Positions 8,494 through 61,525 of a DNA stretch of 64,000 bases are shown here, piece by piece (position 1 is the stretch's first letter; every line of letters begins with the position of its first letter). The DNA is from Macrostomum lignano (lineage: Eukaryota): positions 1 to 64,000 of the forward strand of contig NIVC01001574.1 of NCBI GenBank assembly GCA_002269645.1, written 5' to 3'. The notes beneath the pieces are model-generated. The model saw only the letters and a program-made list of their open reading frames with translations, did no database searches and was not told the origin of the DNA. The position numbers and the translations under genes are program-made.

Positions 8494-8552
<59 letters not shown>

Positions 8553-10022: not shown

Positions 10023-10139
10023 CAAGTTCGGAAGGCATAGAGAGGGAAGATGGATAAATCAAGGTCAAATTCGCAGCTTCCAGCCTCGGCCAGATGCTGT
10101 TAAATTGTGTTTTTTGTATCTTGCCCATCCCGCTGACTC

Positions 10140-12449: not shown

Positions 12450-12644
12450 AACTTTGCAGACACTGGGGGGAGGACGCAGCTCTAGTCTTGATCCGGCAAA
12501 CGTTGGGGACAATTCAATGCTAATAAATTATGCTCTTGGTTATCGCTTGCAACTTCGAAATTAGTTAAATTCGAAATTTGGAAACTCATTCAATAACCAG
12601 ACAGCCGGAAAACAGGAAAATCTGTCAGAGTCAAATGATCAGAT

Positions 12645-13545
12645 AGTGAGAGAGTCAGATAGTGAGAGAGTCAGATAGTGAGAGAGTCAGATAGTGAGAG
12701 AGTAAGATAGTGAGAGAGTAAGATAGTGAGAGAGTAAGATAGTGAGAGAGTAAGATAGTGAGAGAGTCAGATAGTGAGAGAGTAAGATAGTGAGAGAGTA
12801 AGATAGTGAGAGAGTCAGATAGTGAGAGAGTAAGATAGTGAGAGAGTCAGATAGTGAGAGAGTCAGAGAATCAGAGAGTCAGAGAATCAGAGAGTCAGAG
12901 AATCAGAAAATCAGAGAATCAGAGAGTCAGAGAGTCAGAGAATCAGAGAGTCAGAGAATCAGAGAGTCAGAGAGTCAGAGAATCAGACAGTCAGAGAGTC
13001 AGAGAGTCAGAGAATCAGATAATCAGATAATCAGACAGTCAGAGAGTCAGAGAGTCAGAGAGTCAGAGAATCAGAGTCAGAGAATCAGAGAATCGGAGTC
13101 AGAGAATCAGACAGTCAGAGAGTCAGAGAATCAGACAGTCAGAGAGTCAGAGAATCAGACAGTCAGAGAGTCAGAGAATCAGAGAGTCAAAGGGCCAGAG
13201 AATCAGAGAGTCAGAGTCAGAGAATCAGAGAATCAGAGTCAGAGAATCAGAGAATCAGAGTCAGAGAATCAGACAGTCAGAGAGTCAGAGAATCAGAATC
13301 AGAGAATCATAGAGCCCGAGAGTCAGATAGTGAGAGAATCAAAGAATCAGAGTCAGAGAATCAGACAGTCAGAGAGTCAGAGAATCAGAGAGTAAGATAG
13401 TGAGAGAGTGAGAGAGTCAGAGAATCAGAGTCAGAGAATCAGAGAATCAGAGTCAGAGAATCAGAGAATCAGAGTCAGAGAATCAGAGAGTCAGAGAGTC
13501 AGAGAATCAGACAGTCAGAGAGTCAGAGAATCAGAGAGTCAGAGG
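12645..13545. repeat. Purine-rich 8-14-bp tandem repeats
   Basis: (gagagtcagatagt)n followed by (cagagagt/cagagaat)n. Confidence 0.92.
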
Positions 13546-21966: not shown

Positions 21967-24900
21967 ATGCGACTGTGGCTCACTCTGGGCCTTCTGCTGG
22001 CCACCGTCCTGCCAGCAACTGCCAGCAGCGACTTCGGCGCCACCTGCTCAGCTGTGGACTCCTTGGCTCGGCTCGCTGAGTTCTTCGCCAGGAACTCGCT
22101 GAAGATCGACGCCGACGGCTACTTTGGAGCCGCCATCGCCTTCCTGACCTTCGACTCGGCGCCCACCAGCTCCAGCGCTACGGAGCGTCGAGTTGCAGAT
22201 CTGTGCGGCGACGCTCAGGCCGCCGAGCTGCGTCGAGCTGTCGATCAGCTTCGACAAGTGCTGGTCGATTTTCGAGCTCGAGTAGGCGGGAAGAAGTCGA
22301 GAAGCGGTGGAGACTATGATGTTGAAACCTACTGGGGCATTTGCCGGCCTATGGAGGCTGTGATGCGGCGGCTGCTCAGTCAGAGGCGGTTTCGCTGGCG
22401 CTGGCTTGAAGACTCGGGACATCACGGAGCTGCGGTAGACGCTAAGCAGGCTCAGGCTTGGCTGAAGTCCTTGAAGAGTCGGTTGGTAGAGTACAATGAG
22501 CCCAGGGGCGACGCGTGCTTCAGGAGGATGTTGGCGAGTAGAAAGTGGAGGTGAGCGCTTGCTGATGAGGTGTCAGGCAAGTAGTGGAGGTTTCAGGCAA
22601 GTAGCGGATGTGTCAGGCAAGTAGTGGAGATGTCAGGCAAAGTATGGAGGTGTCAGACAAAGGATGGAGGTGTCAGACAAAGGATGGAAGTGTCAGACAA
22701 AGGATGGAGGTGTCAGACAAAGGATGGAGGTGTGAGACAAAGGATCAAGGTGTCAGACAAAGGATCAAGGTGTCAGACAAAGGATCAAGGTGTCAGACAA
22801 AGAATGGAGGTGTCAGACTGAACAGTACCAGAAAGTACGTTAAAACAACTACCGTAATTCGCTCCCCTCTACTCTGCTTCAGTCGTTCAGCCAGCTGCTC
22901 CGCCTCATCAGCCTGCAGGCGGATGTTTCTCAGCGCCGAGCCCAACAAGGGCTACGCCCTGACGCACCAGCTGATCTACTGGGCCGCCTCCATCGATGTG
23001 AGTTAACTCCAAATCCCAAGGTTCAGTAAAACATGGAGAAACATGGAGGGAGATAGTGGCATATAAATAATGCTTAGGTCTCGAGTGCATCCATTTTCGC
23101 CTCGAACTGGCACTCACTGCAGCGCAACTGCCACCTGAAGCTGTCCGATGGTCGGCCAGTGGACCGGGCTCTGCTGTCCGGCGCCTGTGGCCGAGTCCTG
23201 TCTGAGCACCGCCACATCTTGGCGCTGAACTCGCCAAGTAGCACCCTAATTGACTTGGCCTTGGAGCAGGGTGAGTCCCGCAATTGCAACCAGCGTTGAA
23301 GCAATTCTGCCCATGGATGGCTGTACACACTCACACACTGGCTGTTTTTGACATCCCTGCAATCGATCTTCTCGCTTCCAATCCAAGAGTTCAAGGGTCC
23401 ATGCTCTCTTGAAACTCCAAGTGTCCTTGGATGAAAACTTCGCCAGATTAGTTGATTGGTCGGTCGCGTTACCCCTGCTCTGACCACCCCTTAACTACAG
23501 CTGTCATCTGCGGCTCACTGGGCTACCGGGACTTCTTCACGGACTCGACCTTGCTACTCCTGCGCCGGCTGCAGGACGAGAGGCTGGGCTGCATCCCTGA
23601 GGAGATCGCGGCGTCAGTGACTTGGAAAAATGCCACGGTATTGCCGGGACGAAGGCTCATGCACAACACGGTGCTGAACGGTGAGATCTGGAGCTCTGCC
23701 AGCAGCCAGTCATTAGCTCCCAGTCAGTAGCTGGTCATTAATCTACAGTCAGTAGCTGGTCATTAACCTACAGTCAGTAGCCGGTCATTAACCTACAGTC
23801 AGTAGCTGGTCATTAACCTACAGTCAGTAGATGGTCATTAACCTACAGTCAGTAGCCGGTCATTAATCTGCAGTCAGTAGCTGGTCATTAACCTACAGTC
23901 AGTAGCCGGTCATTAACCTACAGTCAGTAGCTGGTCATTAACCTACAGTCAGTAGATGGTCATTAACCTACAGTCAGTAGCTGGTCATTAACCTACAGTC
24001 AGTAGATGGTCATTAACCTACAGTCAGTAGCCGGTCATTAACCTACAGTCAGTAGCTGGTCATTAACCTACAGTCAGTAGATGGTCATTAACCTACAGTC
24101 AGAAGCCGGTCATTAACCTACAGTCAGTAGCTGGTCATTAACCTACAGTCAGTAGATGGTCATTAACCTACAGTCAGTAGCCGGTCATTAATCTGCAGTC
24201 AGTAGCTGGTCATTAACCTACAGTCAGTAGCCGGTCATTAACCTACAGTCAGTAGCTGTTCATTAACCTACAGTCAGTAGCCGGTCATTAACCTACAGTC
24301 AGTAGATGGTCATTAACCTACAGTCAGTAGCCGGTCATTAACCTACAGTCAGTAGCTGGTCATTAACCTACAGTCAGTAGATGGTCATTAACCTACAGTC
24401 AGTAGCCGGTCATTAACCTACAGTCAGTAGCTGGTCATTAACCTACAGTCAGTAGATGGTCATTAACCTACAGTCAGTAGCCGGTCATTAACCTACAGTC
24501 AGTAGCTGGTCATTAACCTACAGTCAGTAGATGGTCATTAACCTACAGTCAGTAGCTGGTCATTAACCTACAGTCAGTAGCCGGTCATTAACCTACAGTC
24601 AGAAGCCGGTCATTAACCTACAGTCAGTAGATGGTCATTAACCTACAGTCAGTAGCCGGTCATTAACCTACAGTCAGTAGCCGGTCATTAATCTGCAGTC
24701 AGTAGCTGGTCATTAACCTACAGTCAGTAGCCGGTCATTAACCTACAGTCAGTAGCTGGTCATTAACCTACAGTCAGTAGATGGTCATTAACCTACAGTC
24801 AGTAGCTGGTCATTAACCTACAGTCAGTAGATGGTCATTAACCTACAGTCAGTAGCCGGTCATTAACCTACAGTCAGTAGCTGGTCATTAACCTACAGTC

Positions 24901-41410: not shown

Positions 41411-41697
41411 TAGTCAAACTGATTTACAACTGATTATCAATGAACAATTAAATTTCTAAGCACTGGAGATGAATGGGAAGGAGACAAACTGAAAATGGCT
41501 AATTGGGTAAAACTGAAAAACTCGTTTCCACTCCAGGTGCTAATTTATAGAACTCCTTGCTTGTGTCCCATTTTGGTTTGAGAAAGTATACAAAACAACC
41601 CCTGGCCAGCGACCATAGAGGATTCCTTGAGACCATGAGAGCAGACCAGCATCACTCACACAGCGTTGGGAGCGCAGCCAGAAAAGAGGCAGAAGGC

Positions 41698-44536
41698 ATG
41701 CACTATTGGGAGATCCTGCAACTTCTGACTCTTCTTCTGTTGCCAACCTATCGAACTGCAGCCGCCAGCGTTGAGAATTCTGGCATGATTTGTGCAGCAG
41801 CTGACTCGCTGTCTCGGCTGGCTGAGCTCTTCGCCAGGAACTCGCTGAAGATCGACGCCGACGGCTACTTTGGGGCCGCCGTCGCCTTCCTGACCTTCGA
41901 TTCGGCGCCCGCCAGCGCCAGCGCTACGGAGCGTCGAGTTGCAGATCTGTGCGGCGACGCTCAGGCCGCCGAGCTGCGTCGAGCTGTCGATCAGCTTCGA
42001 CAGGTGCTGGTCGATTTTCGAGCTCGAGTAGGCAGTAAGAACCCGAGAAGCGGTGGAGACTACGATTTTGAAACCTACTGGGGCATTTGCCGGCCGCTGG
42101 AGGCTGTGATGCGGCGGCTGCTCAGTCAGAGGCGGTTCCGCTGGCGCTGGCTTGAAGACTCGGGACCTCACGGAGCTGCGGTAGACGCCAAGCAGGCTCA
42201 GGCCTGGCTGAAGTCCGTTGAAAGATTGGTGATGAGGTACAATGATACGATGGGCGATGCCTGCTTCAGCAGATTGTTGGACAGTCCAAGCAAAAGGTGA
42301 GTCTTCAGCGACCTGTCAAGATGAAGGGTGATCAGGAGTTTGACTCTGGCAGTATTAACTGGTAAGAGCTGAAAAAGTTTGATTTCAACTGCTTGAACTT
42401 TAGGTTTGTAGAATGCTTGGATTTTTTATGCAGCTTTTTGCCCAAGATTTTTTGAAGTTGCAACATTCCTGTTCGAGAGGTCTAAAGAAGGTGCATTTCG
42501 TGTTAGGTGGAACATGAGATACGGCTGTAGATTCAGCAATGGTCGCTGCATCCAAAAATTATCTAAAGACGACAGAATTATGTAAACCCAGTGGGGCCTT
42601 TGCATAAATAATAATATGATGACACATTGAGCACGCGAATTCGCTTCAGCCGCTCATCGCCCTGCCAGCCTCCGCCAGCATGCAGGCGGATGTTTCTCAG
42701 CGCCAAGCCAAGCATGGGCTACGCGCTGACGCACCAGCTGATCTACTTGGCCGCCGCAATCGATGTGAGCCAGACTCTTTATCATGGTCCCGTTTCCATA
42801 GCCTAGGATTTCCCCATATTGCAGCGATCTCGGGATGCCCCGCACTGCAGCGCTCCTGCCACCTCAGACTGTCCACCGGTCGGTCAGTGGACCAGTCTCT
42901 GGCCGCCGAGGCCTGTCGGTCTGCCCTGGCAGAGCACCGGAAAATTCTGGCCTTGAATTCGGCTGGCATCGACATGATTGACCTGGCATTGGAGCAGGGT
43001 GAGCATACTTGAGACCTAGAACACGGTTGGCGGTTGTAATTTTTACCTGAGTATGGGAAAGTCAGGGCCGATGTACACTCTGTGTGAGCGTGTTGCCGAG
43101 TAGGCATGGCATTAACATTCCTCAGTTTTACTAACTAATCAACTAACATTTAGGGCTTCAAAAAGGAGTAACTACTGGAAACACGAAGAACTTAGCTACC
43201 CGATGCTTGAAGAAGCTGTCTGCATTATGAAAATATGAAAACTATCTTTATTGCTTCGCCGTGTTGCAGCTTTCATCTGCGGCTCTCTGGGCTACCGAGA
43301 CTTCTTCACCGACTCCACTCTGCTGCACCTGCGCCGGCTGCAGGACGAGAGGCTGGGCTGCATCACTGAGGAGCTCAACTCGCTCAGCACTCGGCAAACT
43401 CTGCCGGCTCCCACTGGACGGAAGCTCATGCACGAAGTGATGCTTGATGGTGAGTCCCGAGTACTGAGTCCCGAGTACTGAGTCCCAAGTCCCGTGTCTC
43501 AAGTCCTGAATCCCGGGTCCTGAGTCCCGAATCCGGAATCATGAGTCCTGAGTCCCGAGTCCCGAATCATGAGTCCTGAGTCCCGAATCATGAGTCCCGA
43601 GTCCCGAGTCTCGAATCATGAGTCCTGAGTCCCGAGTCCCGAGTCTCGAATCATGAGTCCCGAGTCCCGAGTCTCGAATCATGAGTCCTAAGTCCCAAGT
43701 CCCGAATCATGAGTCCTGAGTCCCGAGTCCCGAATCATGAGTCCCGAGTCCCGAATCATGAGTCATAAGTCCCGAGTCCCGAATCATGAGTCCTGAGTCC
43801 CGAGTCCCGAATCATGAGTCCCGAGTCCCAAGTCTCGAATCATGAGTCCTTCGAGTCCCGAATCATGAGTCCTTCGAGTCCCGAATCATGAGTCCCGAAT
43901 CATGAGTCCCGAATCATGAGTCCCGAATCATGAGTCCCGAATCATGAGTCCCGAATCATGAGTCCTGAGTCCCGAATCATGAGTCCCGAGTCCCGAATCA
44001 TGAGTCCCGAGTCCCAAATCATGATTCCCGAGTCCCGAATCATGAGTCCCGAGTCCCGAGTCTCGAATCATGAGTCCTTCGAGTCCCGAATCATGAGTCC
44101 CGAATCATGAGTCCCGAGTCGCGAATCATGAGTCCTGAGTCCCAAGTCCCGAATCATGAGTCCTGAGTCCCGAGTCCTGAATCATGAGTCCTGAGTCCCG
44201 AATCATGAGTGCTGAGTCCCGAGTCCCGAATCATGAGTCCCGAGTCCCGAGTCCCGAATCATGAGTCCCGAGTCCCGATTCCCGAATCATGAGTCCGAGT
44301 CCTGAGTCCCGAATCAGGCGAGTCCTGATTCCTGAGTCCCGAGTCCACAATTAATGACAGTCGTTAACAATCCATGGACCCTTGAGCAAAATTGAACTCG
44401 TTCTTTGTGTCACATTGTCAATCGGATTCAAATTCAAAACGCAAATAGGACTCACTGTACCTTTTCAGGAGCCTGCTCGTCCCACACCAGCGGACTGACT
44501 GCTGTCTATTTGTCGCTGTTTCTAAGAGGCTCCTGA
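41698..44536 (+). CDS. UPF0764/C16orf89-like secreted protein, paralogue B (369 aa). Exons 41698-42296, 42650-42764, 42851-42998, 43270-43449, 44469-44536
   Basis: Internal exon sizes (115/148/180) and phases are the same as paralogue A. Motifs GYALTHQLIY, IDLALEQAFICGSLGYRDFF and CSSHTSGL. Confidence 0.82.
43450..44345. repeat. 7/14-bp composite minisatellite starting at the splice donor
   Basis: gtgagtcccgag... followed by (gagtcccgaatcat)/(gagtccc) units. Confidence 0.93.
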
Positions 44537-48706: not shown

Positions 48707-48937
48707 CTACCAGCGGTAGACTCGATAACTCGCCGGCAGCGGCTTCCCAGGTGCCTTGGCCTCGGGTCCGAGGTCCATGTCCTCCTCGGCCATGGCCTCC
48801 TCCGGCTGCTGCTGGCCGGCCTCGGGCAGCGGCGCCGCGTCCTCCAGCTGGTCGGGCGCCCAGACGTCGGCCAGCGACAGGTCCGCCAGCAGAAACGCGG
48901 CGGTGGCGGCGGTGCACAGGTACCAAGCGAGCTTCAT
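48707..48937 (-). CDS. Small secreted peptide precursor 1 (76 aa)
   Basis: MKLAWYLCTAATAAFLLADLSLA|DVWAPDQ...acidic...GPEAK-APGKPLPASYRVYRW. TATA-like ctataaa ~50 bp upstream (48987-48993). Paralogue at 50548-50781. Confidence 0.8.
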   Translation of the reverse strand: MKLAWYLCTAATAAFLLADLSLADVWAPDQLEDAAPLPEAGQQQPEEAMAEEDMDLGPEAKAPGKPLPASYRVYRW

Positions 48938-49519
48938 GCTGAGATCTGAGCTGGGAGCTGCGAGCTGCAGCCTCGCGCACCTGAACTTTATAGAAGCGCA
49001 ATTTTTTTTCATTCACCTCACGTGGCTGAAAACGAGCGCGAAGCCGGGGACTGCTGGATGTTGCACTTGGACTGGCAATTAAAGTGGCTGAGACGAAGCA
49101 TTGGCGGTCTCCAGTCCAGGTCAGCTGACTAGACGTCCTTGCTTATCGCACAATGACTTCTTCAGCCTCGAGGCAAGAATTGCTGCATTGTCTGGCTTTG
49201 GTGGGCGCATCTTTTGAGCGGCACGATGGGACTCGCTTCAATTGAAAATGGAGGCATTGGGGGCTGTAAACAGCGACTCTAGAGGCACCTGCGGCAGACA
49301 CGTGAGTTCAGGCTCAGTAGTGGGCTCACATTGCTGCGGTGTTAAAGTATTTGCAAAATGCAACTGAATTTTCTCTGCTCGAAAAAAAATTCAACAGTAA
49401 ACACAACAGCTGCGACACAGAGAGAATAGTTAGCACAAGCGAAGAGAGAAGGGAGGTAGATAGGGAGATGGAAGTGAGGAGGTGGAGATGGAAAAGTACA
49501 GGAGAATTGGAGGGGAGAG

Positions 49520-50405
49520 GTAGAGGGAGGTAGAGGGAGACATAAGGGAGGCATACGGGGGGCAGAGGGGGCAGAGGAAAACAGAAGGCAGAGGGGGCAG
49601 AGGGGGCAGAGGAAAACAGAAGGCAGAGGAGGCAGAGGGGGCAGAGGAAAACAGAAGGCAGAGGGGGCAGAGGGGGCAGAGGAAAACAGAAGGCAGAGGA
49701 GGCAGAGGGGGCAGAGGAAAACAGAAGGCAGAGGGGGCAGAGGGGGCAGAGGGAAACAGGAGGCAAAGGGGGGCAGAGGGAAACAGGAGGCAAAGGGGGG
49801 CAGAGGGAAACAGGAGGCAGAGGGGGGCAGAGGGAAACAGGAGGCAGAGGGGGGCAGAGGGAAACAGGAGGCAGAGGCGGCAGAGGGGGGCAGCGGAAAC
49901 AGGAAGCAGAGGGGGCAGAGGGAAACAGGAGGCAGAGGGGGCAGAGGGGCAGGGGAAACAGGAGGCAGAGGGGGGCAGAGGGAAACAGGAGGCAGAGGAG
50001 GCAGAGGGGGCAGAGGGGCAGGGGGAAACAGGAGGCAGAGGGGGGGCAGAGGGAAACAGGAGGCAGAGGGGGGGGCAGAGGGAAACAGGAGGCAGAGGGG
50101 GGCAGAGGAAAACAGGAGGTAGAGGGGGCAGAGAGGGCAGAGGGGGCAGAGGGAAACAGGAGGCAGAGGGGCAGAGAGGGCAGAGGGGGCAGAGGGAAAC
50201 AGGAGGCAGAGGGGGCAGAGAGGGCAGAGGGGCAGAGGGAAACAGGAAGCAGAGGGGGGCAGAGGGAAACAGGAGGCAGAGGGGGGCAGAGGGGCAGAGG
50301 GGGGCAGAGGGAAACAGGAAGCAGAGGGGGGCAGAGGGAAACAGGAGGCAAAGGGGGGCAGAGGGAAACAGGAGGCAGAGGGGGGCAGAGAGAGGCAGAG
50401 TGGGA
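49520..50405. repeat. G/A-rich tandem repeat between the two peptide genes
   Basis: gggggcagagggaaacaggaggcaga-type units. Confidence 0.92.
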
Positions 50406-50547
50406 GGGGCAGCGGGAGGTAGAAGAAACAAAGACCTGGTGAAAAAGCTTTAACTAATTGTTTAGCTAGTCAGCAACAGTGTATATATATTTATGTATTT
50501 ATTAGTCAAAGCTTAAGCGGCAGTTCACCGTTACAAAAGAGAGTCGA

Positions 50548-50781
50548 TCAGTTAAAATATCGGTTTCGATACACTGGAGGAGGCCGCCCGGGAAACTTGG
50601 CCTCAGGTCCAGCATCTTCGAGGTCTTCCTCATCTGGAGTCCAGTCTCCTGCCACCGGCTGGTCATCAGGCAGTGGCGCAGCGCCGTTCGCGAGCTCCTG
50701 GTCGGGCGCCCAGACCTCGGCCAGAGCCGGACTTGACAGAAGCTGCAGCAGCAGCAGGGCGGCAGCGAGTCGGCACTTCAT
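50548..50781 (-). CDS. Small secreted peptide precursor 2 (77 aa)
   Basis: MKCRLAAALLLLQLLSSPALA|EVWAPDQ...acidic...GPEAK-FPGRPPPVYRNRYFN. AATAAA on the minus strand at ~50497-50502. Confidence 0.8.
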   Translation of the reverse strand: MKCRLAAALLLLQLLSSPALAEVWAPDQELANGAAPLPDDQPVAGDWTPDEEDLEDAGPEAKFPGRPPPVYRNRYFN

Positions 50782-51254
50782 CGGGCTCAGAGTTTCTCCG
50801 CAAGCAGTTTTATGCCCAGCTGTATTTGCCACAGACTGACTCAGTGCTTGAGTGAGTTAAGTGAGCAGAGAGTCGCCTCAGGCATATTTGAAAGCGTGAG
50901 CTTTTAAATGAGCTTTGATACTCGTGTTCTCGTAATTGCGCTCGGAGCGAAGATACGCAGCGAGCGTGAGTACAATAGCAGAATGAGGTCAAGCAGAGCA
51001 GATTTAACCTGGCATGATGGAAGTCAAGCGGCTAATCCTACACTAACGATTAAGATTGAGCCGTTAATGACAGAACGACTTTCGATTGACTCGTGTGATC
51101 AAGCTCAACAATTTGTCTGCGAGTCCAGAACTTGGCCTTTTGGCTCGTAACTTGTAAAGTTGTAGGGCTTGCGTGCTTTATAAACGATTGCAACTTGCAG
51201 TGACTACTATAGTAATAAGAGACAAGCACCAGTAACTAAACAAGTCTCTCAGTC

Positions 51255-52035
51255 CCAACCCCCAGTCCCCTCAATCCCAACCTCTCAATTCCCAAAACCC
51301 TCAATTCCAACCCCTCAGTCCAACCCCCAGTCCCCTCAATTCCAACCCCTCAGTCCAACCCCCAGTCCCCTCAATTCCAACCCCTCAGTCCAACCCCCAG
51401 TCCCCTCAATTCCAACCCCTCAGTCCAACCCCCAGTTCCCTCAATTCCAACCCCTCAGTCCAACCCCCAGTCCCCTCAATTCCAACCCCTCAATTCCAAC
51501 CCCTCAGTCCAACCCCCAGTCCCCTCAATTCCAACCCCGCAGTCCAACCCCCAGTCCCCTCAATTCCAACCCCTCAATTCCCAAAACCCTCAATTCCAAC
51601 CCCTCAGTCCAACCCCCAGTCCCCTCAATTCCAACCCCGCAGTCCAACCCCCAGTCCCCTCAATTCCAACCCCTCAGTCCAACCCCCAGTCCCCTCAATT
51701 CCAACCTCTCAATTCCCAAAACCCTCAATTCCAACCCCTCAGTCCAACCCCCAGTCCCCTCAATTCCAACCCCTCATTCAATCCCAATCCCTCAATTCCA
51801 ACCCCTCAATTCCAACCCCTCATTCAATTCCAACCCCTCATTCAATTCCAATCCCTCAATTCCAACCCCTCATTCAATTCCAATCTCTCAATTCCAACCC
51901 CTCAATCCCAACCCATCAGTCCCAACCCATCAGTCCCAACCCATCAGTCCCAACCCATCAGTCCCAACCCATTCGTCCCAACCCATCAGTCCGAATCCCT
52001 CGGTCCAACCCCCAGTCCCAACCTCAAGTCCCAAC
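51255..52035. repeat. C-rich tandem repeat
   Basis: ccaacccccagtcccctcaatt / ccaacccctcagt units. Confidence 0.92.
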
Positions 52036-52915
52036 CAGAGCATTTCCCAGCCTTTCTGAGCCATTAACTAGATTTTGCATCAACAGGAGAGTTGATCAGT
52101 AACACTAGAAAGTTGTTATCGATACATATCGGAGACTACCTGAACCAGCTCAGCCGTCTGAGGTCTCAAATTATTGAGAAAGTTGAGAGAGCTCAGAGAT
52201 AAGCTGTATAAAGGAAGCAGCCAGGATATTTTCTATTGCACAGCTAACCAGAAATCAAATTAGCACAGCTGGTACACAATTAAATTTCGCTGAATTATAT
52301 TAGTCAAATTTTTGCAATAACAAAGACTAGAATTGAAACAGGATAAGCACAAATAACAGGCTGTGTATTATTCAAGGTCAAGGCGGGCATGTAAATAAAT
52401 TGCAAATTCATCTGAATAAAACATAAAATTCTACCAGTCAGTAATCATACTATACTGAATAGGGGAAATGAGTAGTCAAAATTTTGAACAATTTTTTGTA
52501 CAAATTTGCAATGCCAGTCAAGCAGTTGTGACCAGATATGACAGTAATAGGGGCAATAAATCACTGAGATTCAATCCCGATTATCATGCACTCTTTACGA
52601 AGTTTAATTCGCTACATATCGGCAATATACCGGTAGATTAATATTACTTTTCGAGAATCTAGGGAATGATGATGTTTGTAATCTAGCTGAAGAGTAATAA
52701 TGTTATGGGACGGGGAAGCTTAGATGCATTAAAGCTGGGGGATGATGAAACTGGGAGATGATGAAGCTTGGGGGATGATGACGCTCGGGGATGATGAAGC
52801 TGGAACGTGAAATAAAGATAACGTGGGTCACAATTAAACGAAGAACGCCAGCAACGGACAGAAGGCTGCAACAGTTTAGGTGCAAATGTCCACCAAAATC
52901 GCAACCCCCCAGTTC

Positions 52916-55900
52916 TCAGTGAGTCTCCTTGGCCAGCCAGTCCACCTTGGCCCGGCGCAGGTGGTACAGCTGCCTGGCCTCCGAGTACTGCCGGACAAAG
53001 CCGGCCATGTCCAGACTGCCTGTGGCCAGAGCCTCGGCCACCGACTCTGCCTGCTCATCCGCCTCCATGCAGGCGGCCTCCAGCAGGGTGAGCAGCGTGT
53101 CCGGGCTGGCCGCCGAGTTCAGCGACTCCAGCCGGCTGCGCGTTTCCAACAGAATAGCGCGCTGAGCGTCGGCCTCGTCCGACAGCGCGGCCAGGCGGCG
53201 CCGGCTCTCCTCGATGCGCGGCCCCAGGGCGAAATTCAGCTCGGCCGTCTGCCGGTTGGCCGCCATGGCCGTCTGCTTGGCCTGGCCGAGCTGCTGCAAC
53301 TGCAGGGTCGGGGTCTCAGTGAGATCTCTAGCTGAGACTCGCGAGGTGAGAGTCTAGGTGAGTCTGGTTGAGAGTCTAGGTGAGTCTGGGTGAGAGTCTA
53401 GGTGAGTCTGGGTGAGAGTCTAGGTGAGTCTGGGTGAGAGTCTAGGTGAGTCTGGGTGAGAGTCTAGGTGAGTCTAGTGAGAGTCTAGGTGAGTCTGGGT
53501 GAGAGTCAAGGTGAGTCTGGGTGAGAGTCAAGGTGAGTCTGGGCGAGAGTCTAGGTGAGTCTGAATGAGAGTCTAGGTGAGTCTGGGTGAGAGTCTAGGT
53601 GAGTCTGGGTGAGAGTCTAGGTGAGTCTGAATGAGAGTCTAGGTGAGTCTGAATGAGAGTCAAGGTGAGTCTAGGTGAGTCTAGGTGAGTCTGGGTGAGT
53701 CTGTCTGCATGCAAGGCGGGTACAGCACGCCTGTGTAGCATGAGACAGACTAGGCCTACGGGCTAAGGTCTGCGATCCTACACACCTGCACCCCCTCTAT
53801 TCTGGTGCAGGAATGGCTGGAGAACTCTCTCCAAGCTGACTCGCAAGCCGACCCAGGGGTTCACGCCCCGCATGTGTTCAAGGCAGCCCTAGGGCTGCTG
53901 GACTGACTGGGCTCCGGCGGCGGCAACCCATCCGTGGCCTTTTGGCCAAGTTGGGTACGGGCTCCGCCCGGAAGTGAACCTGTGCGTATCAGGTACCTCT
54001 GGCCACGGCTCTGAGGAACAGGTACCACCCTCTGACCTTAACAGGGTATGCGGCCAGTCCGCAGGCTCCGGAGGCAGTCCTCCTGCTTCCCTCAAGGGCC
54101 CAGTGTAGTACCGCGCTGATGGTCCTTTGGTTCGGCCTCTGGTTTTTCCAAGCCGGGCTCCTAGCCGGGGAGTTTCTCGGTTGCTAGCGGTCGGGCCGGT
54201 ACGGGCTTAAGCCACCCCCCGGTCGCTACCTCTTGGCCTGGTTGTTGGGTTTGGGGTTACGGCCCAGCGGCTTCTCACCTTTAGTCCCCACTCGCCTTTC
54301 AGCGACTCATGGAGTATTCATTTACCTCCGACACGTCCGAGGCTGCTGGAGCACCAACCGAGGTTGGCACCGCGGCCCAGCCGGACATTCGCAACACCGG
54401 AACCCCCGGTGCCTCTCAATCTGCCGCTGCAGCCGCTCAGGATAATACCGGAGTGGCTGGACAAGACAGCGGACCTCAGATTTCGAAAAAGAAGGCCCGT
54501 AGCATTGCTCGCTACAAAGCCTTCCTCCAGCGCAAAGCGGAGGAACGGAGGAATGCGAAAGCCGCCCCTCCGGCCACCTCTGAGGAGGGTGCCGGTAACT
54601 ATGCGAACCCCGCGGAGGAGACGACATCCGACAAGGGGGTGGACCCCGCGCGCCGGTCTGATGCGTCAGGTGCCGCCGAAGCTCCTGGTACGGCTGGCCC
54701 CTCCCGTGACCGGACCTCTGCCCGTGTGGAAGCTCCCACGGCCGTGGAGGGATCCAAAGCGGGGGGCGCTGGCCAAACCACAAAGCCGAAGCGAACCTAC
54801 GCGGCTATGGCCAAAAGGCAGCCGGCCCTGGTTATCCAAGGCCAGGAGACGCCTCTTACGGCCGAACAGCTCGATCTTATCTGGCGCAGGTTGGACTCCC
54901 ACCTGGTCAAGATGGCCTTGAGCGGCACTACTATTCGAGTCCAAAAGACGAAAGTCGAGGACCAAGCCCTCTATATCCAGCCCACCGACAGCCAGTCAGG
55001 ACAGCAGCTCCTCGAGCTGCTGAAAACCTTCGACTGGGGTACGGAGCTGGAGAACCTGTTCATCTACAGGGAGGACGAGCGACCCCGGACACACCGGCAC
55101 CGTGCCTGGATCCCGGCTCGCAGCTGCATCACCAAGGCCGACGAGCTGCGTCACCTGCTAGTGGCTTCCAACCCGGAGCTACCGGCCAACGGTGTCGTAG
55201 TTCACGAGACCATCTCCAAGCCGGGCGGAGACGGTTTCACGGCTATTCTTGGACTGTCGGATAGCTGGATGCTCCGCTACCCGGACATGTCCATCATCTC
55301 TGTCGGGCTGTTGCAGATTCAGCTCTTTAGCTTTGAGTCTGACGCCACCCGCCCACCGCCCCCGGAGAAGCGTAAGCGGGCAGTCGGGGGCTCTGCCGGG
55401 CGGAAACGCCCAGGAAAAGAAGCTCCCGGTCGTCACGACCCCTCCGAGGACGTGGACCCTGTCAGAGGGAAAGCCGCGAAAGCTGCAGCAACAGGCGGAC
55501 GTGGAAAGGGCCGGAAACCCGCCCGGAACACTATCCGCTCTGGTCTGACTCAGCGCGCGAAGCAGCTGCTGGACACCGCCAAGGCCCCCAACCGCAGCCA
55601 CCCCCAGCCCAGTGTCACCACTGCGGCCCCCCCGGAAAACCGGGCCGAGAGCGAGAATGCCGCCCAGGTAGCGACCTCTCCCTCGACCATGGAATCCATC
55701 CGGGAGGAGCCCATGGAGCTGGAGCCTGGAGCTATCGGCGAGGCAGAAGAGGCAGCTCTCCTGCACAACTCGCCTTGAGCCGGCAGGAAGCTGCGCGGAC
55801 CACTCGTGGAATTCCCGGAGTGGACATCCTGCAGCTTAACCTGCACCACTGCATCGCGGCCTCGACCAACCTGATGCGGGTGGCAAACTTTGCGAAACCG

Positions 55901-58900
55901 GGCATCATCCTACTCCAGGAGCCCTGGACAAAGAAAGGTAAGATTCCGAATATTCCTGCTGGTTTTGACTGTTTTCAAGACCCCCAAAACCCCAGAGCAG
56001 CCATTTTCGTATCTACCCACCTCAAAGCTTGGCACAGACCGGACCTCTCTGACAGAGACCTCTGTGTCATTCAATCCAACCACATTATCACCAACCGCAC
56101 GGTCATCATCGCCTCGATCTATATCCCTGGCGATGGCCCCGCGGTTCCACCCAACCTCACCTCCCTCGTGGACTACTGCTCTAACCGTAGGTTCGAGCTG
56201 CTGGTGGCGGGCGACATCAACGCTCACCATACCCACTGGGGCAGTAATACTTCCAATAGCAGAGGCGAGGAACTCCTTGCTTACATCTGCACCACCAACA
56301 CTGAGTTTTGCAACATTGGTGGAACCCCCACCTTTGACAACGGGCGATGGACGGAGGCCCTCGACGTTACCCTCGTCTCCCATGGCTTGGCTCCTTTAGT
56401 CAAGGACTGGGAGGTGTGGGACGAAGAGGAGTCTCTGTCTGACCATCGCTTCGTTCGTTTTCGTTTGCAATCCTCTTGCCCCAAGCCTCACATTCTGTGG
56501 AAAAGGAACGTCCGGAACACTGATTGGACGGCTTTCACGGAAACCCTGAAATGCCAGACAGATCAGCTGACTACCGTCGCTCCAACCACCTGTCAGGAAG
56601 TGGATGACCTTGCAGACTTGCTCAGCAAGACCGTCCTGACAGCCCATGAGGCTTCCTGTCCTCTTAAAGCCTACAAAGGCAAAAAATCCGCCCCCTGGTG
56701 GCACCCGGCGCTCGGATCCCTCCGGCGCAAGGCAAAGTGCCTCCAACGGAAAGCTCGCAAGAGCAAGGACCCAGCTGACCTGGCCGCCTATCAAGAAGCG
56801 ATCCGCGACTTTAAGCGTGAAATCAGGAAAGCCAAGTCCGACAAATGGCGCCAATACTGCGCGGAGTTAGAAGGCACCCGCCCTACTTCGCGCGTAGTTA
56901 AGGCTCTCACCCTCGACAAAATGTCAAAGCTCTCAGTCATTAAAAGACCGGACGGCCGGCTCGCTGAGAACCCTGGGGAATCGCTGGACATTATGCTCAC
57001 CAGCTCTTTCCCACGTGCCGCACCGCAGCTAGGCCCACCGGACCACTCTCCGGGCGGACAGATCCTGGCTTCGACCATCATTACTAGAGAGAGGACGGCT
57101 CGCGCCGCAAAATCCTTCTCTCCTTTCAAGTCCCCGGGTCCTGACAACATTTATCCTGCCTTCCTTCATGAGGCAGTTAAAAATGACAGGTTTCTCGGCC
57201 TCCTCTGCAACCTCTTCAAGGCCAGCATTACCCTCGGGTATGTGCCAAAAGCCTGGCAAGAGGCTACGGTAGTCTTCATACCCAAGCCAGGAAAGGGAGA
57301 CTATCACTCCGCCAAAGCTTACCGCCCTATCAGTCTGACGTCCTTCTTCCTCAAACTGATGGAACGGCTGGTGCTCTGGCGCCTTCTCCTCGTTGAGCTG
57401 AGGAACTCCCCGCTCTCCCCTAATCAGCACGCCTTTCGTCCTGGACGTTCCATCGAAAGTGCGCTGCACGCCATTGTCGACAAGCTGGAGCGCGCCGTGC
57501 TTGGCAGTGGATACGCGCTGTCGCTTTTCCTCGACATTGATGGTGCTTTTAACAATGTGCTCTTTGAAGCCTTTAAGCGAGCCCTGGAATCCCGGGGCAC
57601 GCACGAGCACCTCACCCGCTGGATCATGTACATGGTCTCCCATCGTACTGCCACCTCGCACCTCCTAGGACACTCACGCTCCGTGGAAGTCCAGAAAGGC
57701 GGACCGCAAGGTGGAGTCCTCAGCCCGATCCTCTGGAACTTAGTCATGGACGAGCTGCTTTGCAGCCCGCATCCGGACCCTGTTCAGAAGGTCGGCTATG
57801 CGGACGATGTTACCGCCACTGTGGCTGGACCATCGCCCGAGATCCTCAGGGACCTCCTTCAAGCCTTCATCCACCGTGCCGAGCGCTGGGCACATAGCTG
57901 CGGTCTCAGGTTCTCTGAGTCTAAAACCGTGGCTATCATGTTCACCAGCCGCCGAAACTGGAGGATCGAACCGCTCTCCCTCTACGGCAAACCTGTTGCC
58001 ATGGAGAAACAAACTAGATGTCTGGGCGTCACCCTCGACCACAGGTTGAGCTGGACCCCGCACGTCCAAACTAAAGCCCGCAAAGCTCTCGCGACTCTCG
58101 CGCAGATCCGCAGAGCTTTCGGTGCTACCTGGGGCCTCACCCCCGCCGCCTCTGGTGGATTTACACTGCCATTGTTAGACCGGCCATCTCCTTCGCCGGC
58201 TTCATTTGGAACAGTGCCCTAGAGGTGAAAGGGGTTCTTGAGGTTTTAAATAGGGTGCAAGGCCGCGCTTGTCGAGCTATCATGAGCGCGGCTCCCTCAA
58301 CGCCCTTCGCTGGCATGAACTCCTTCTTGGACATTCCCCCCTCGACCTCTTTGTTAGAGGGGAGGCTATGAAAACCACCCGTCGTCTGCTTGACGCGGGT
58401 GTCTAAATCCAGAAGCAGTTTGCCTTCAGAAAGCGGAACCTCCGGCCGCATGGCGACCTCAGCCTGCGAGACCTGGAAGCAGCGAGAGGCCTGCTGACCC
58501 TCTCGGACGGAATCCCGTCCACGCTCTGCCCCCCGCTCAAATTCAAAACCAGCATTCCACCACGCCATGAAGCGAGAGACAACTGGAAACCCCATGAAAT
58601 CCACTGCTTCACTGACGGGTCCCAAATCAACTCCGCCTCTGGATACGGCTACTGCATCGTGTCTGGAGGGAGAACTGTGGCGACCTTCTCCCAACACACC
58701 GGCACCTGCTCCACCGTCTTCTAGAACGAAGTTCTCGCCATCAGCTCCTGCGCCATGGAGCTGTACAATCAGCGCGTCTGGGGGAAGGAAATTACCCTCC
58801 ACTCGGACAGTCAAGCGCGATTCACGCCCTTGAGCGCACCACCACCTGCTCGCGTACAGTCCTCGACTGCATCGGGCAGCTCAACCGCTTAGGCGCCTCC

Positions 58901-60439
58901 AACAAGGTGTCCCTAAGGTGGATCCCCGGGCATTCGGGCCACCCCGGCAACGAGCTGGCCGATCGCCTGGCCAAGGCTGGCTCGACGGGTTCTTTTACTG
59001 GTCCCCTGCCCGTGGCCCCCACCCCCATCGCCGTTGTCACCACTCGGATCAACCAGTGGGTGGCTTCTAAGCACAGGGAGAGGTGGGCTAACGCCCCGAC
59101 TGCCGGCAATCCCGCGCGGCTGTCCCCTGTCCCTCCCCGCCCTACGCAGGGCCCTGCTTGGACTCAACCGCAGGGACATCAGGGCGGTTACCATGGCCCT
59201 CTCGGGTCATGGCTGCTTTGCCAGGCATCGTTACCTCCAGGAGAAAATCCGCAGTGAGGAATGCCCTTTCTGCCTCTCCGGTGTCGAGAATGCGGAGCAC
59301 TTCATCTGTGAATGCCCCGCCTTCACTCAGGACAGGCTCACCTACCTCGGCCCAAACCCGGACCTCTCCGACGTTTTCAGGCCCGAGAATCTCTGCCAGC
59401 TCTTTCGCTACCTAAGGGCTACCGGGCGAGCGACAATCCACCTCCTGGACTCTCCGGAGGGGGACCGCGCTGCGGACGCCGGCGCCACCGGAACTCCCTG
59501 CGCGACACCGCAGCACTAGCTGCCCGTGGTCGCCAGGGGTTAGCGAAATGGGCGGCAACGCTTCCTCGCTGTTTCCGGACGCACGGAGCCCCCTGCAGCT
59601 AAGTCTAAGTAAGTCTGGGTGAGTCTGGATGAGAGTCTAGGTGAGTCTGGATGAGAGTCAAGGTGAGTCTGGGTGAGAGGCTAGGTGAGTCTGAATGCGA
59701 GTCTAGGTGAGTCTGGATGAGAGTCTGGGTGAGTCTGAATGAGAGTCAAGGTGAGTCTGAATGAGAGTCTAGGTGAGTCTGAATGAGAGTCTAGGTGAGT
59801 CTGAATGAGAGTCTAGGTGAGTCTGAATGAGAGTCAAGGTGAGTCTAGGTGAGTCTGGGTGAGTCTGGATGAGAGTCTAGGTGAGTCTGAATGAGAGTCA
59901 AGGTGAGTCTGAATGAGAGTCTAGGTGAGTCTGGGTGAGAGTCTAAATGAGTCTGGGTGAGAGTCTAGGTGACAGTCTAGGTGAGTCTGGGTGAGAGTCT
60001 AGGTGAGTCTGGGTGAGAGTCTAGGTGAGTCTGGGTGAGAGGCTAGGTGACAGTCTAGGTGAGTCTGGGTAAGTCTAGGTGACTCTGGGTGAGTATAGGT
60101 GAGTCTGGGTAAGTCTAGGTGAGAGTATAGGTGAGTCTGGGTGAGTCTAGGTGAGAGTATAGGTGAATCTGGGTGTCTAGGTGAGTCTAGGTGAGTCTAG
60201 GTGAGTCTGGGCGGAGAATCCGGGGCTCTCACCTCGCCGCTACTGGAGGTCATCTCGGCCACCTTGTCATCCGAGTCCAGCAGCTTCTGCAGCTCCTCCT
60301 TGTCCATGCGCTTCAGCTGAGCCAGGAGGCTGTCGAGGCCGCTGCCACCGCCGCAAGCAACAGCTCCAACTTCGTAGGCAGGCGGCGGCTGCTGCTGGGA
60401 CTGGGGCTGACCACCGTACAGACTGTAGTTCGGGTACAT
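52916..60439 (-). CDS. VPS37: ESCRT-I subunit VPS37 (Mod(r) domain), 196 aa. Exons 60233-60439 and 52916-53299
   Basis: [22 protein letters not shown]|LQQL...[17 protein letters not shown]...[47 protein letters not shown]. Phase-0 GT/AG. Confidence 0.88.
54309..55778 (+). CDS. LINE ORF1 (gag-like, 489 aa)
   Basis: Long intact ORF just upstream of ORF2, with a basic low-complexity N-terminus and a central globular region resembling LOA-type ORF1 (DUF4780-like; from memory, not searched). Confidence 0.8.
   Translation: MEYSFTSDTSEAAGAPTEVGTAAQPDIRNTGTPGASQSAAAAAQDNTGVAGQDSGPQISKKKARSIARYKAFLQRKAEERRNAKAAPPATSEEGAGNYANPAEETTSDKGVDPARRSDASGAAEAPGTAGPSRDRTSARVEAPTAVEGSKAGGAGQTTKPKRTYAAMAKRQPALVIQGQETPLTAEQLDLIWRRLDSHLVKMALSGTTIRVQKTKVEDQALYIQPTDSQSGQQLLELLKTFDWGTELENLFIYREDERPRTHRHRAWIPARSCITKADELRHLLVASNPELPANGVVVHETISKPGGDGFTAILGLSDSWMLRYPDMSIISVGLLQIQLFSFESDATRPPPPEKRKRAVGGSAGRKRPGKEAPGRHDPSEDVDPVRGKAAKAAATGGRGKGRKPARNTIRSGLTQRAKQLLDTAKAPNRSHPQPSVTTAAPPENRAESENAAQVATSPSTMESIREEPMELEPGAIGEAEEAALLHNSP
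55775..59520 (+). pseudogene. LINE ORF2 (APE-RT-RNase H-CCHC), disrupted after 58140
   Basis: [24 protein letters not shown]; [36 protein letters not shown]; [30 protein letters not shown]; [14 protein letters not shown]. Frameshifts and in-frame stops at ~58404 and ~58722. Confidence 0.9.
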
Positions 60440-60484: not shown

Positions 60485-61525
60485 TCAGGGTGCTGACCCA
60501 CTGCATATCCAGGGTGCTGACCCACTGCGTCTCCAGGGTGCTGACCCACTGAATATCCAGGGTGCTGACCCACTGAATCTCAGGGTGCTGACCCACCGAA
60601 TCTCCAGGGTGCTGACCCACTGCGTCTCCAGGGTGCTGACCCACTGAATATCCAGGGTGCTGACCCACTGAATATCTAGGGTGCTGACCCACTGAATATC
60701 CAGGGTGCTGACCCACTGAATATCCAGGTTGCTAACCCACTGCATATCCATCCAGGTTGCTGACCCACTGAATATCCAGGTTGCTGACCCACCGAATCTC
60801 CAGGGTGCTGACCCCCTGCGTCTCCAGTGTGCTGACCCACTGAATCTCAAGGGTGCTGACCAACTGCGTCTCCAGGGTGCTGACCCACTGAATATCCAGG
60901 GTGCTGACCCACTGAATATCCAGGGTGCTGATCCACTGCATATCCAGGTTGCTGACCCACTGCGTCTCCAGGGTGCTGACCCACTGAATATCCAGGTTGC
61001 TAACCCACTGCATATCCATCCAGGTTGCTGACCCACTGAATATCCAGGTTGCTGACCCACTGAATATCCAGGTTGCTGACCCACTGAATATCCAGGTTGC
61101 TGACCCACTGAATATCCAGGTTGCTGACCCACTGAATATCCAGGGTGCTGACCCACTGAATATCCAGGGTGTTGACCCACTGAATATCCAGGGTGCTGAC
61201 CCACTGAATATCCAGGGTGTTGACCCACTGAATATCCAGGGTGCTGACCCACTGAATATCCAGGGTGCTGACCCACTGAATATCCAGGGTGCTGACCCAC
61301 TGAATATCCAGGGTGCTGACCCACTGAATATCCAGGGTGCTGACCCACTGAATATCCAGGGTGTTGACCCACTGAATATCCAGGGTGCTGACCCACTGAA
61401 TATCCAGGGTGCTGACCCACTGAATATCCAGGGTGTTGACCCACTGAATATCCAGGGTGCTGACCCACTGAATATCCAGGGTGCTGACCCACTGAATATC
61501 CAGGGTGCTGACCCACCGAATCTCT
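60485..61525. repeat. 24-bp minisatellite upstream of the VPS37 ATG
   Basis: Unit ccagggtgctgacccactgaatat. Confidence 0.96.

Follow-up and report, generated by a model that had tools for sequence, protein, structure and literature searches.

Background

For free-living flatworms, characterised antimicrobial or other secreted effector peptides are very few; such molecules usually come from lineage-restricted genes for small secreted proteins. The antimicrobial families of Hydra are bipartite in charge, occur as tandem paralogues and are restricted to one lineage, and some have no conventional cleavage site (PMC10945409). Planarian prohormones have been recognised by a signal sequence, a length of less than 200 aa, and basic sites flanking a peptide that is predicted or confirmed by mass spectrometry (PMC2953531). 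For Macrostomum lignano, at least 76 prostate-limited transcripts have been described, many of which encode small, secreted, homologue-free and apparently fast-evolving proteins (PMC5977470).

Proline-rich antimicrobial peptides have been defined by 25% or more Pro and a net charge of +1 or higher in the mature peptide, by a PRP motif that is indicative and non-essential, and by two essential properties, antimicrobial activity and an intracellular target, either DnaK or the 70S ribosome (PMC7736402, Box 1). In arasin 1, a peptide of the spider crab Hyas araneus whose sequence we verified in PMC7736402, residues 13-23 are needed for activity against Gram-positive bacteria (C. glutamicum) and against fungi (PMC3543460).

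Here we describe two genes, ORF1 and ORF2, in the window, that is, the 64,000 nucleotides of M. lignano contig NIVC01001574.1 that were analysed. They are tandem duplicates, each with a single exon and transcribed separately, and together they make up a genuine family of secreted prepropeptide-like genes that is restricted to one lineage. Their present status is that of an uncharacterised hypothetical-protein family and not that of a function discovered; a peptide used in defence or signalling is a possible product. Transgenesis, RNAi and in situ hybridisation are all available in M. lignano, so that experiments on a two-gene family with clear motifs would cost little. If the C-terminal tails are active, they would provide a short, Cys-free, proline-rich scaffold with an unusual processing site; should the proteins prove to come from glands or seminal fluid, the list of fast-evolving reproductive proteins would grow longer.

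Results and discussion

A tandem pair of small secreted-protein genes

Both genes lie on the minus strand, ORF1 at 48707..48937 (76 aa plus stop) and ORF2 at 50548..50781 (77 aa plus stop), exactly where a sequence-only reading of the window had placed two intronless ORFs of 76-77 aa, and the CDS is uninterrupted in both. The ORF1 translation is MKLAWYLCTAATAAFLLADLSLADVWAPDQLEDAAPLPEAGQQQPEEAMAEEDMDLGPEAKAPGKPLPASYRVYRW and that of ORF2 is MKCRLAAALLLLQLLSSPALAEVWAPDQELANGAAPLPDDQPVAGDWTPDEEDLEDAGPEAKFPGRPPPVYRNRYFN. Judged by their sequence similarity (BLASTP 8e-10, 28/58 identical; tblastn inside the window, 6e-12), the two are true paralogues, with homology beyond chance. The same reading had proposed looking for more paralogues of the VWAPDQ/GPEAK type, and tblastn found no third copy in the 64-kb window; a weak in-window match at 11733-11933 is Ala/Pro low-complexity sequence and hence not a third paralogue.

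The supposition that such genes are easily missed by annotation was not borne out, as GenBank already carries both, as hypothetical proteins, on NIVC01001574.1 and on two homeologous contigs. This annotation derives from transcripts only, and the gene models cover CDS length only. The ORF1 model on NIVC01001574.1 spans 48707-48949 (80 aa, 5'-partial), and the exact ORF2 protein is present in NCBI/UniRef (P0002). Homeologous copies of ORF1 are P0004 and an 87-aa model in L002, and those of ORF2 are P0001 and P0003. The two other copies of the locus hold the same gene pair amid the same gene neighbours, and in all three loci ORF1 and ORF2 carry different transcriptional-unit ids.

The pair lies on the same strand as a Mod_r (VPS37-like) gene, 2-4 kb downstream of it, and M. 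lignano has polycistronic trans-spliced units (PMC5730564); both facts would suit an arrangement in which the ORFs are exons of one larger gene, one of the findings that the earlier account named as refuting it, or downstream cistrons of the Mod_r unit. However, each ORF has its own ATG, signal peptide and stop, belongs to a separate transcript-derived unit, and has a TATA-like box of its own, spaced as expected from the annotated 5' end. For ORF1 this is TATAAAG at 48986..48992 (minus strand), 55 nt upstream of the ATG, which does not vary among the three loci and can be aligned to the box of ORF2; the annotated ORF1 transcript starts no further downstream than 48949. For ORF2 it is TTTAAAAG at 50901..50908 (minus strand), 127 nt upstream of the ATG, and the homeologous ORF2 transcripts start about 99-102 nt upstream of the ATG, as seen from 5'-UTR read-through in P0001 and P0003. 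ORF2 also has its own AATAAA polyadenylation signal at 50498..50503 (minus strand), 45 nt past the stop codon and kept in all three loci. The larger-gene or cistron arrangement is thereby largely refuted and exceedingly unlikely. ORF1 and ORF2 are very probably a real gene pair for small secreted proteins, in agreement with the earlier description of separate genes, each with a predicted signal peptide, an acidic part and a cationic tail.

Domain organization and predicted processing

In ORF1, the predicted signal peptide (aa 1-23; 48869-48937) is followed by the acidic part (aa 24-61; 48755-48868) and the cationic tail (aa 62-76; 48710-48754); the corresponding parts of ORF2 are aa 1-21 (50719-50781), aa 22-62 (50596-50718) and aa 63-77 (50551-50595), all on the minus strand. 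Both signal peptides have canonical n-, h- and c-regions with small residues at -3 and -1 (SLA and ALA), and conservation between the paralogues starts exactly at the predicted cleavage point. Cleavage is predicted between LA and (D/E)VWAPDQ and would yield a secreted product of 53-56 residues. This mature product is Cys-free and Pro-rich; its N-terminal part is strongly anionic, and its short C-terminus is cationic and rich in Pro, Arg and Tyr. Modelling with AlphaFold gave a mean pLDDT of 58.6 and a pTM of 0.20, with only the signal helix folded, and the mature product is accordingly predicted to be disordered.

The compositional features first picked out from the sequence alone proved accurate. 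The motifs (D/E)VWAPDQ, AAPLP and GPEAK are invariant in ORF1 and ORF2. The acidic part, described as a spacer of about a dozen D/E, contains 12 and 13 of these residues in 38-41 positions, for a net charge of -11/-12, about four times that of the tail and opposite in sign. In both proteins the tail has 15 residues, none of them Cys, and a net charge of +3; the predicted peptides are APGKPLPASYRVYRW and, for ORF2, FPGRPPPVYRNRYFN.

Between acidic part and tail stands a junction, GPEAK-xPG(K/R)P, that is invariant in both paralogues. Its sole basic residue is a lone Lys, and no basic residue is found at -4, -6 or -8. Convertase cleavage is not predicted at a lone Lys that lacks a basic residue at one of these positions, so that it is not predicted here and the tail is possibly never released. 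Neither mature part contains a dibasic site (KR, RR, KK or RK) anywhere; there are no repeated peptide units, each precursor having one tail, and no C-terminal Gly for amidation on either tail.

Search for relatives

Word-indexed searches of 5.8 billion proteins returned the M. lignano copies only, and an exhaustive HMMER profile search of 1.84 billion representative proteins gave no relative outside M. lignano. Five other HMMER hits were rejected; these are proteins of 471-4711 aa matched in 4-7 stretches, and the four whose sequences were inspected are unrelated repeat proteins, with scores inflated by the repeats. Pfam yielded nothing usable for either protein, PDB sequence searches with both junction-plus-tail peptides gave no match, and no similarity to known neuropeptide families was found by Pfam or the HMMER profile search. 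By these searches the family is so far known only from M. lignano, with no detectable relatives. The identifiers Mlig025628, Mlig013626 and Mlig020052 and the peptide strings were not found in the full-text literature searched or in the supplements of PMC5816591, PMC5730564, PMC7336406, PMC5946080, PMC5977470, PMC12896417 and PMC6410801, and no M. lignano single-cell atlas was found in the literature.

Conservation and selection

Between homeologous loci the CDS are 96.5-97.4% identical with zero indels, whereas the distal flanks are 74-90% identical, with indels; the CDS are thus the best-conserved, indel-free segment of the locus. Codon changes fall more often on the third position (34, vs 23 and 22 at the other two). 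The paralogues have diverged to a dS of about 0.8-1.1, and length differences in their mature parts come in codon units. For the mature part, dN/dS is 0.43 (Z = 2.4); estimates of omega range over 0.3-0.7, and the pooled homeologue selection test is not significant (Z = 1.3). Overall, constraint is weak. With values of 0.3-0.7, dN/dS neither refutes nor strongly supports the earlier idea of proline-rich antimicrobial peptides.

Constraint is uneven along the protein. The mature N-terminus and the junction, rather than the tail, are the most conserved parts: pN is 0.51-0.59 in the tail vs 0.27 in the pro-region ("spacer"), and the signal-peptide part stands at a pN/pS of about 1. Such variability may just as well indicate that the tail matters little.

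If ORF1 and ORF2 were young orphan transcripts, their ORFs having little or no protein-level function and persisting through GC-richness and recent duplication, one would account for the restriction to M. lignano, the omega of 0.3-0.7 with its non-significant homeologue test, the signal-peptide part with its pN/pS of about 1, and a GC-rich CDS that keeps antisense frames open too. Yet the paralogues, at the dS given above, are old and have nonetheless retained intact ORFs, functional-looking signal peptides and invariant motifs, and the codon-unit length differences, the omega of the mature part and the indel-free conservation of the CDS also count against it. We consider the orphan-transcript explanation very unlikely.

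The pattern of conservation would also suit a secreted gland product that is unprocessed or differently processed, has a reproductive or other exocrine role and functions as a whole disordered acidic-basic polypeptide, for example a seminal-fluid or prostate protein or a product of pharyngeal, cement or epidermal glands. Many members of the Mlig-pro1-76 set of the same species are likewise small, secreted and without homologues, and appear to evolve rapidly. ORF1 and ORF2 are, besides, a tandem duplicate pair under weak constraint; a convertase-type site is lacking, and conservation peaks at the mature N-terminus and junction instead of the tail. Membership in the prostate set, however, rests on prostate-limited expression in in situ hybridisation, and neither an id nor a sequence of ORF1/ORF2 matched in the supplements of PMC5977470. 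Nor was there a match to prostate or tail-specific candidates in the supplements of PMC7336406 and PMC6410801, which, as other transcript ids are mostly used in all three papers, is weak evidence; moreover, nothing in the sequence is specific to reproduction. A whole-polypeptide gland product has a modest chance of being the right answer.

Comparison with known precursors

Promelittin and apidaecin precursors resemble ORF1 and ORF2 in layout, a signal peptide being followed by an acidic propiece rich in Pro, Ala, Glu and Asp and then by a cationic C-terminal peptide, and no sequence similarity was found between these precursors and the flatworm proteins. The propiece ends in PEA, as does that of promelittin. 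The further proposal of melittin- or apidaecin-type trimming by X-A/X-P dipeptides fails: the count of uninterrupted X-Pro/X-Ala dipeptides from the mature N-terminus is 0 in both registers, and A/P makes up a fraction of 0.16-0.50 at P1, against 11/11 in promelittin. Because the propiece, unlike that of promelittin, is not a chain of X-Pro/X-Ala dipeptides, stepwise removal by a dipeptidyl peptidase cannot run through it. Apidaecin precursors differ further in having tandem units, acidic spacers and dibasic sites, where ORF1 and ORF2 have one tail, no repeats and no dibasic site.

The arminins and periculins of Hydra are similar in their signal peptide, their negative part followed by a positive C-terminal part, their clustered paralogues and their lack of outside homologues. 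They form families of 9-28 paralogues, most of them with Cys; their C-terminal parts are far more cationic, and activity has been demonstrated for these families. The flatworm genes, by contrast, number two per locus and encode Cys-free proteins with tails of only +3. Shared ancestry with the Hydra families was tested by Pfam and HMMER and not found. By analogy, then, ORF1 and ORF2 may work like the Hydra-type peptides, a statement about features and not about membership.

A further candidate is a signalling-peptide precursor (for a neuropeptide, hormone or pheromone) resembling the planarian spp genes, which would be cut at the lone Lys to release as ligand either the C-terminal 15-mer or the conserved N-terminal acidic peptide. 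The planarian genes likewise encode small signal-peptide proteins with no homologues beyond flatworms, and some are recently duplicated neighbours (PMC2953531, Figure S3 legend). ORF1 and ORF2 have predicted signal peptides and lengths of 76 and 77 aa, well within two of the three properties used for planarian prohormones (PMC2953531); the third is present minimally, as a single invariant Lys (GPEAK) before the tail with no upstream basic residue, in a junction that is itself invariant. Planarian spp genes, however, were accepted on basic sites flanking their peptides, while here the tail, if it is the ligand, is conserved less than any other part, contrary to what is usual for neuropeptides. 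The missing C-terminal Gly and dibasic sites, the lack of similarity to known neuropeptide families, and the failure to find the peptide strings in the literature also count against a signalling precursor, which we regard as unlikely.

Similarity to proline-rich antimicrobial peptides was found for one tail. The ORF2 tail, FPGRPPPVYRNRYFN, is identical to residues 12-26 of arasin 1, FPGRPKPIFRPRPCN, at 8/15 positions, a score reached by 1/2000 shuffles, and the common core, PGRPxP(V/I)(Y/F)RxR, coincides with the arasin 13-23 stretch. The PPPVYRNR of ORF2 also resembles the C-terminal PRPIYNRN of pyrrhocoricin and PRPVYRS of riptocin. The ORF1 tail has no similarity to arasin 1, and its score against proline-rich antimicrobial peptides was reached by 729/2000 shuffles, that is, without order-specific similarity. 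Arasin 1 differs in having 37 residues with a Cys-rich C-terminal part, the flatworm tails being shorter and Cys-free, and in the charge of its N-terminal 25 residues, net +7 against +3. Its precursor is not known to have an acidic propiece, unlike those of the flatworm. Homology cannot be established from a match of 15 residues, so that we take convergence as the default, and the likeness of the ORF2 tail to arasin 1 is a lead, not proof. An overlapping arasin 15-mer of higher charge is weakly active, with a MIC of 12.5 uM for C. glutamicum and >100 uM for Gram-negatives (PMC3543460).

With the predicted tail boundaries, Pro content is 4/15 (27%) in the ORF2 tail and 3/15 (20%) in the ORF1 tail; the net charge of +3 lies above the minimum of +1 in both, and Pro-Arg-Pro occurs in neither. 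The earlier idea of proline-rich antimicrobial peptides has partial support from the resemblance of the ORF2 tail to the active segment of arasin 1; the Pro content of the ORF1 tail and the want of PRP in both tell against it.

A possible role in host defence

As the leading explanation, still tentative and possible rather than probable, ORF1 and ORF2 would be prepropeptides for host defence, of the taxonomically restricted kind in which an anionic part is joined to a cationic one. The acidic part would hold the product soluble and inert within the secretory pathway, until an endoprotease other than a classical dibasic convertase cut the invariant GPEA-K junction and freed a cationic proline-rich tail of 15-16 residues. 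The freed tail would act extracellularly, most plausibly on microbes, in the way that proline-rich antimicrobial peptides do, and would diversify fast between copies while the pro-region and junction stay conserved. The bipartite charge (-11/-12 vs +3) and the occurrence as tandem paralogues without relatives outside the lineage, both traits of Hydra antimicrobial families, suggest such a role by analogy, and the contrast between conserved pro-region and hypervariable tail may point the same way, as may the likeness of the ORF2 tail to arasin 1. Against it, a charge of +3 on a 15-residue peptide falls near the bottom of the antimicrobial range, the more highly charged arasin 15-mer is itself weakly active, no convertase cut is predicted at the junction, and the ORF1 tail has only 20% Pro, with no PRP motif in either.

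A more specific version of host defence, that this is the first flatworm family of proline-rich, arasin/pyrrhocoricin-like antimicrobial peptides, convergent, lineage-specific and ribosome- or chaperone-targeting, with non-convertase release at GPEA-K and rapid diversification between tandem copies, is quite improbable. If true, it would mean that a ribosome- or chaperone-targeting peptide had been convergently invented in a regenerating model with transgenesis and RNAi.

Antisense frames and intergenic spacer

Open frames also run antisense over both genes, at 48756-49082 and 50597-50839 on the plus strand, each starting MASGP. We rejected them as genes: they begin with TTG and lack a signal peptide, the annotated transcripts are on the minus strand, and the enrichment of third-position changes in the minus-strand frame likewise disfavours them. 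No tRNA or Rfam family was found within the window. Most of the 1.6-kb intergenic spacer is taken up by a G-rich 35-bp minisatellite (49558..50400, not assigned to a strand), which is found at the equivalent position in L001 and L002 and which, as far as can be told, lies outside either transcript.

A transcribed tandem pair of single-exon genes

The window carries two single-exon genes that are real and transcribed; they arose by tandem duplication, and the pair exists in three homeologous copies. ORF1 (48707-48937, minus strand, 76 aa) and ORF2 (50548-50781, minus strand, 77 aa) are uninterrupted and lie exactly where the sequence-only reading had placed them, on contig NIVC01001574.1 of assembly Mlig_3_7 (GCA_002269645.1), whose coordinates are identical to those of the window. 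They are paralogous (28/58 identical residues, 8e-10 by BLASTP; 6e-12 by tblastn within the window), and a tblastn search of the 64 kb for a third paralogue returned none. An Ala/Pro/Gly-rich ORF of 256 codons with APGAA and APGM repeats (11679-12449, plus strand) matched ORF1 weakly; it was rejected as a paralogue, the match being low-complexity, and may be one exon of a gene for an elastin-like or structural protein.

Far from being easily missed by annotation, as had been supposed, both genes are in GenBank as 'hypothetical protein BOX15_Mlig...' (models of 80 aa and 77 aa on the window contig), and the same pair is annotated on two contigs with homeologous copies of the locus, NIVC01002741.1 (L001) and NIVC01000326.1 (L002). 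Because transcripts were the sole source of the submitted Mlig_3_7 annotation (StringTie/TACO RNA-seq assemblies and a de novo transcriptome, with ORFs by TransDecoder; PMC5730564), these gene models are evidence of transcription. Transcriptional-unit numbers differ by type (Mlig025628 and Mlig020052 versus Mlig013626), so the ORF1 and ORF2 types are not exons of one transcript, and it is hardly credible that they are part of a larger gene, an outcome that the sequence-only reading had considered. The '5'-partial' GenBank proteins are read-through of the 5' UTR, and put the transcript start 12-33 nt or more ahead of the ATG in the ORF1 type and ~99-102 nt ahead of it in the ORF2 type. Each start follows a TATA-like box by a few tens of bases (TATAAAG at 48986-48992 for ORF1, TTTAAAAG at 50901-50908 for ORF2); the two boxes align with each other and are invariant in the three loci, and an AATAAA 45 nt past the ORF2 stop is likewise kept in all three.

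Homeologous loci and selection

All three loci share their neighbours, a Mod_r (VPS37-like) gene on one side (in the window ~52915-60439, minus strand, upstream of the pair and on its strand) and a DUF4735 gene on the other (41641-44536, plus strand, downstream and on the opposite strand). The peptide-gene copies lie at 8374-8607 and 10019-10249 on L001 and at 10094-10327 and 12085-12315 on L002. Both CDSs are identical between L001 and L002, with the window copy ~3% different. This fits the history described for the DV1 line, in which a recent extra duplication followed an older polyploidy (PMC5730564). Differences of ORF1 from its homeologues include clustered multi-nucleotide changes inside single codons: CTG>GGT (Leu>Gly) at codon 67 in the tail (48737-48739) and ACC>GTC (Thr>Val) at codon 12 in the signal peptide (48902-48904).

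When the window is compared with the homeologous loci, identity is 96.5-97.4% in the CDS, free of indels, 83-96% with few indels in the proximal 150 nt, and 74-91% with many in the next 250 nt, a gradient that points to real genes. Changes between ORF1 and ORF2 number 23, 22 and 34 at codon positions 1, 2 and 3; Nei-Gojobori omega is 0.57 for the whole pair, 0.43 for the mature part (Z = 2.4) and ~1 for the signal peptide, and pooled homeologues give 0.44 (6 synonymous and 8 non-synonymous changes; Z = 1.3, not significant). This pattern is consistent with weak purifying selection: the copies do not show the dN/dS near 1 that the earlier proposal took as counter-evidence, although constraint is nonetheless weak. 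That they are largely functionless young orphans appears very improbable.

Small proteins of bipartite charge

The products are small secreted, disordered proteins of bipartite charge without known relatives. The hydrophobic N-termini are divergent, each opening with a short, charged n-region that leads into a hydrophobic core, with small residues at -3/-1 (SLA and ALA); since paralogue conservation sets in exactly behind this predicted cleavage point, secretion is very likely. The architecture is as originally described: (D/E)VWAPDQ, AAPLP and GPEAK-x-PG-(K/R)-P-x-P do not vary, the stretch from the signal peptide to GPEAK has 12 Asp/Glu residues in ORF1 and 13 in ORF2 (net charge -11 and -12), and the 15-residue tails, APGKPLPASYRVYRW (ORF1) and FPGRPPPVYRNRYFN (ORF2), are Cys-free with net +3 each. 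Antisense ORFs run over both genes on the plus strand (48756-49082, 108 codons; 50597-50839, 80 codons), opening from TTG starts with 'MASGP', GPEAK reverse-complemented; we judged them a by-product of GC-rich CDS (GC3 0.89 and 0.61) and not genes.

The mature proteins, Cys-free 53-56-mers with 15-18% Pro, are best described as intrinsically disordered on the basis of a low-confidence AlphaFold model (mean pLDDT 58.6, pTM 0.20) whose sole sizeable helix is the signal peptide. Neither Pfam nor the PDB chains gave a match. When 1.84 billion representative proteins, a collection probably without other Macrostomum species, were searched exhaustively with a HMMER profile, no relatives came up outside M. 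lignano; five further matches were to far longer proteins, each aligned in several separate stretches, and the four examined are unrelated repeat proteins. Since only M. lignano copies were recovered, the family would be lineage-restricted as far as this collection shows. The pair is thus far undescribed, and of a familiar kind, that of taxonomically restricted small secreted prepropeptide genes.

Processing of the precursors

The proposed analogy with melittin and apidaecin precursors did not hold up. The melittin-type route requires a propiece of consecutive X-Pro/X-Ala dipeptides, and promelittin has Ala or Pro at P1 in 11/11; from the mature N-terminus of ORF1 and ORF2 the uninterrupted run is 0 in either register, and the Ala/Pro fraction at P1 is 0.16-0.50. 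The apidaecin layout is one of repeated units with dibasic sites, whereas ORF1 and ORF2 have neither. Ahead of the tail the only basic residue is a Lys, the invariant one in GPEAK, with none at -4, -6 or -8, where the classical prohormone-convertase rule calls for one, and such cleavage is therefore not predicted. With both routes lacking and a lone-Lys junction that bears no convertase signature, we can only infer release of the tail.

Candidate functions

Tentatively, ORF1 and ORF2 may be lineage-specific host-defence prepropeptides, in which a cut at the GPEA-K junction would free the cationic Pro/Arg/Tyr-rich tail. Between the paralogues, the acidic part has diverged least (pN 0.27) and the tail most (pN 0.51-0.59). 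Many antimicrobial peptide and toxin families pair a conserved prepro region with a hypervariable C-terminal peptide in this way; an unimportant tail would leave the same pattern, and neuropeptide precursors show the reverse. A signalling-peptide precursor is unlikely, although, a convincing basic site apart, the pair falls within the less strict working criteria used for planarian 'secreted peptide prohormones' (PMC2953531).

The host-defence reading has a parallel in Hydra antimicrobial peptide families, some without a conventional cleavage site. Their described design, like that of the pair, is a signal peptide ahead of two halves of opposite charge, with paralogues in tandem and homologues absent beyond the lineage (PMC10945409). 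Tails were compared with 14 pre-chosen peptides (12 proline-rich antimicrobial peptides, melittin and bradykinin). The ORF2 tail is identical at 8/15 positions to arasin 1, FPGRPKPIFRPRPCN (PMC7736402, Table 1), a score reached by 1/2000 composition-preserving shuffles; the ORF1 tail showed no such similarity to the set (729/2000). The ORF2 match spans arasin residues 13-23, needed for activity against C. glutamicum and fungi, but the 15-mer arasin 1(9-23) has only low activity (12.5 uM against C. glutamicum, >100 uM against Gram-negatives; PMC3543460). Proline-rich antimicrobial peptides are defined by at least 25% Pro, net charge of at least +1 and, as essential functional traits, antimicrobial activity and an intracellular target, with PRP indicative (PMC7736402); the ORF2 tail has both the Pro content and the charge, the ORF1 tail is below 25% Pro, and PRP is absent from both.

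An unprocessed gland or seminal product is a somewhat unlikely alternative, to which the resemblance to M. lignano prostate transcripts, many of them small, orphan and secreted (PMC5977470), lends weight. In the literature and supplements searched, the three known gene ids, the peptide strings and a site of expression were all absent. Other secretory roles make up the remainder.

Tandem repeats in the window

The spacer between the genes is occupied by a G-rich 35-bp minisatellite (49558-50400), and just upstream of ORF2 lies an array of C-rich 35-bp units (51248-51923); L001 and L002 have related 35-bp arrays of other lengths at the same positions. A 28-bp array at 4797-6405 (~50 copies, 91% matches, GC ~63%) can be translated without a stop as ...PDPQLLGQPPRSSVAGPAS..., and may be either coding or just a minisatellite. 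Long minisatellites are unusually dense (15398-17354, 23721-25906, 12627-13544, 60486-61521 and others), with units of 14 bp (x143), 25 bp (x87), 8 bp (x117) and 24 bp (x43), and one at 16-18 kb has a strong GC skew of 0.53. This density is consistent with the 15% of simple and tandem repeats in the M. lignano genome (PMC5730564).
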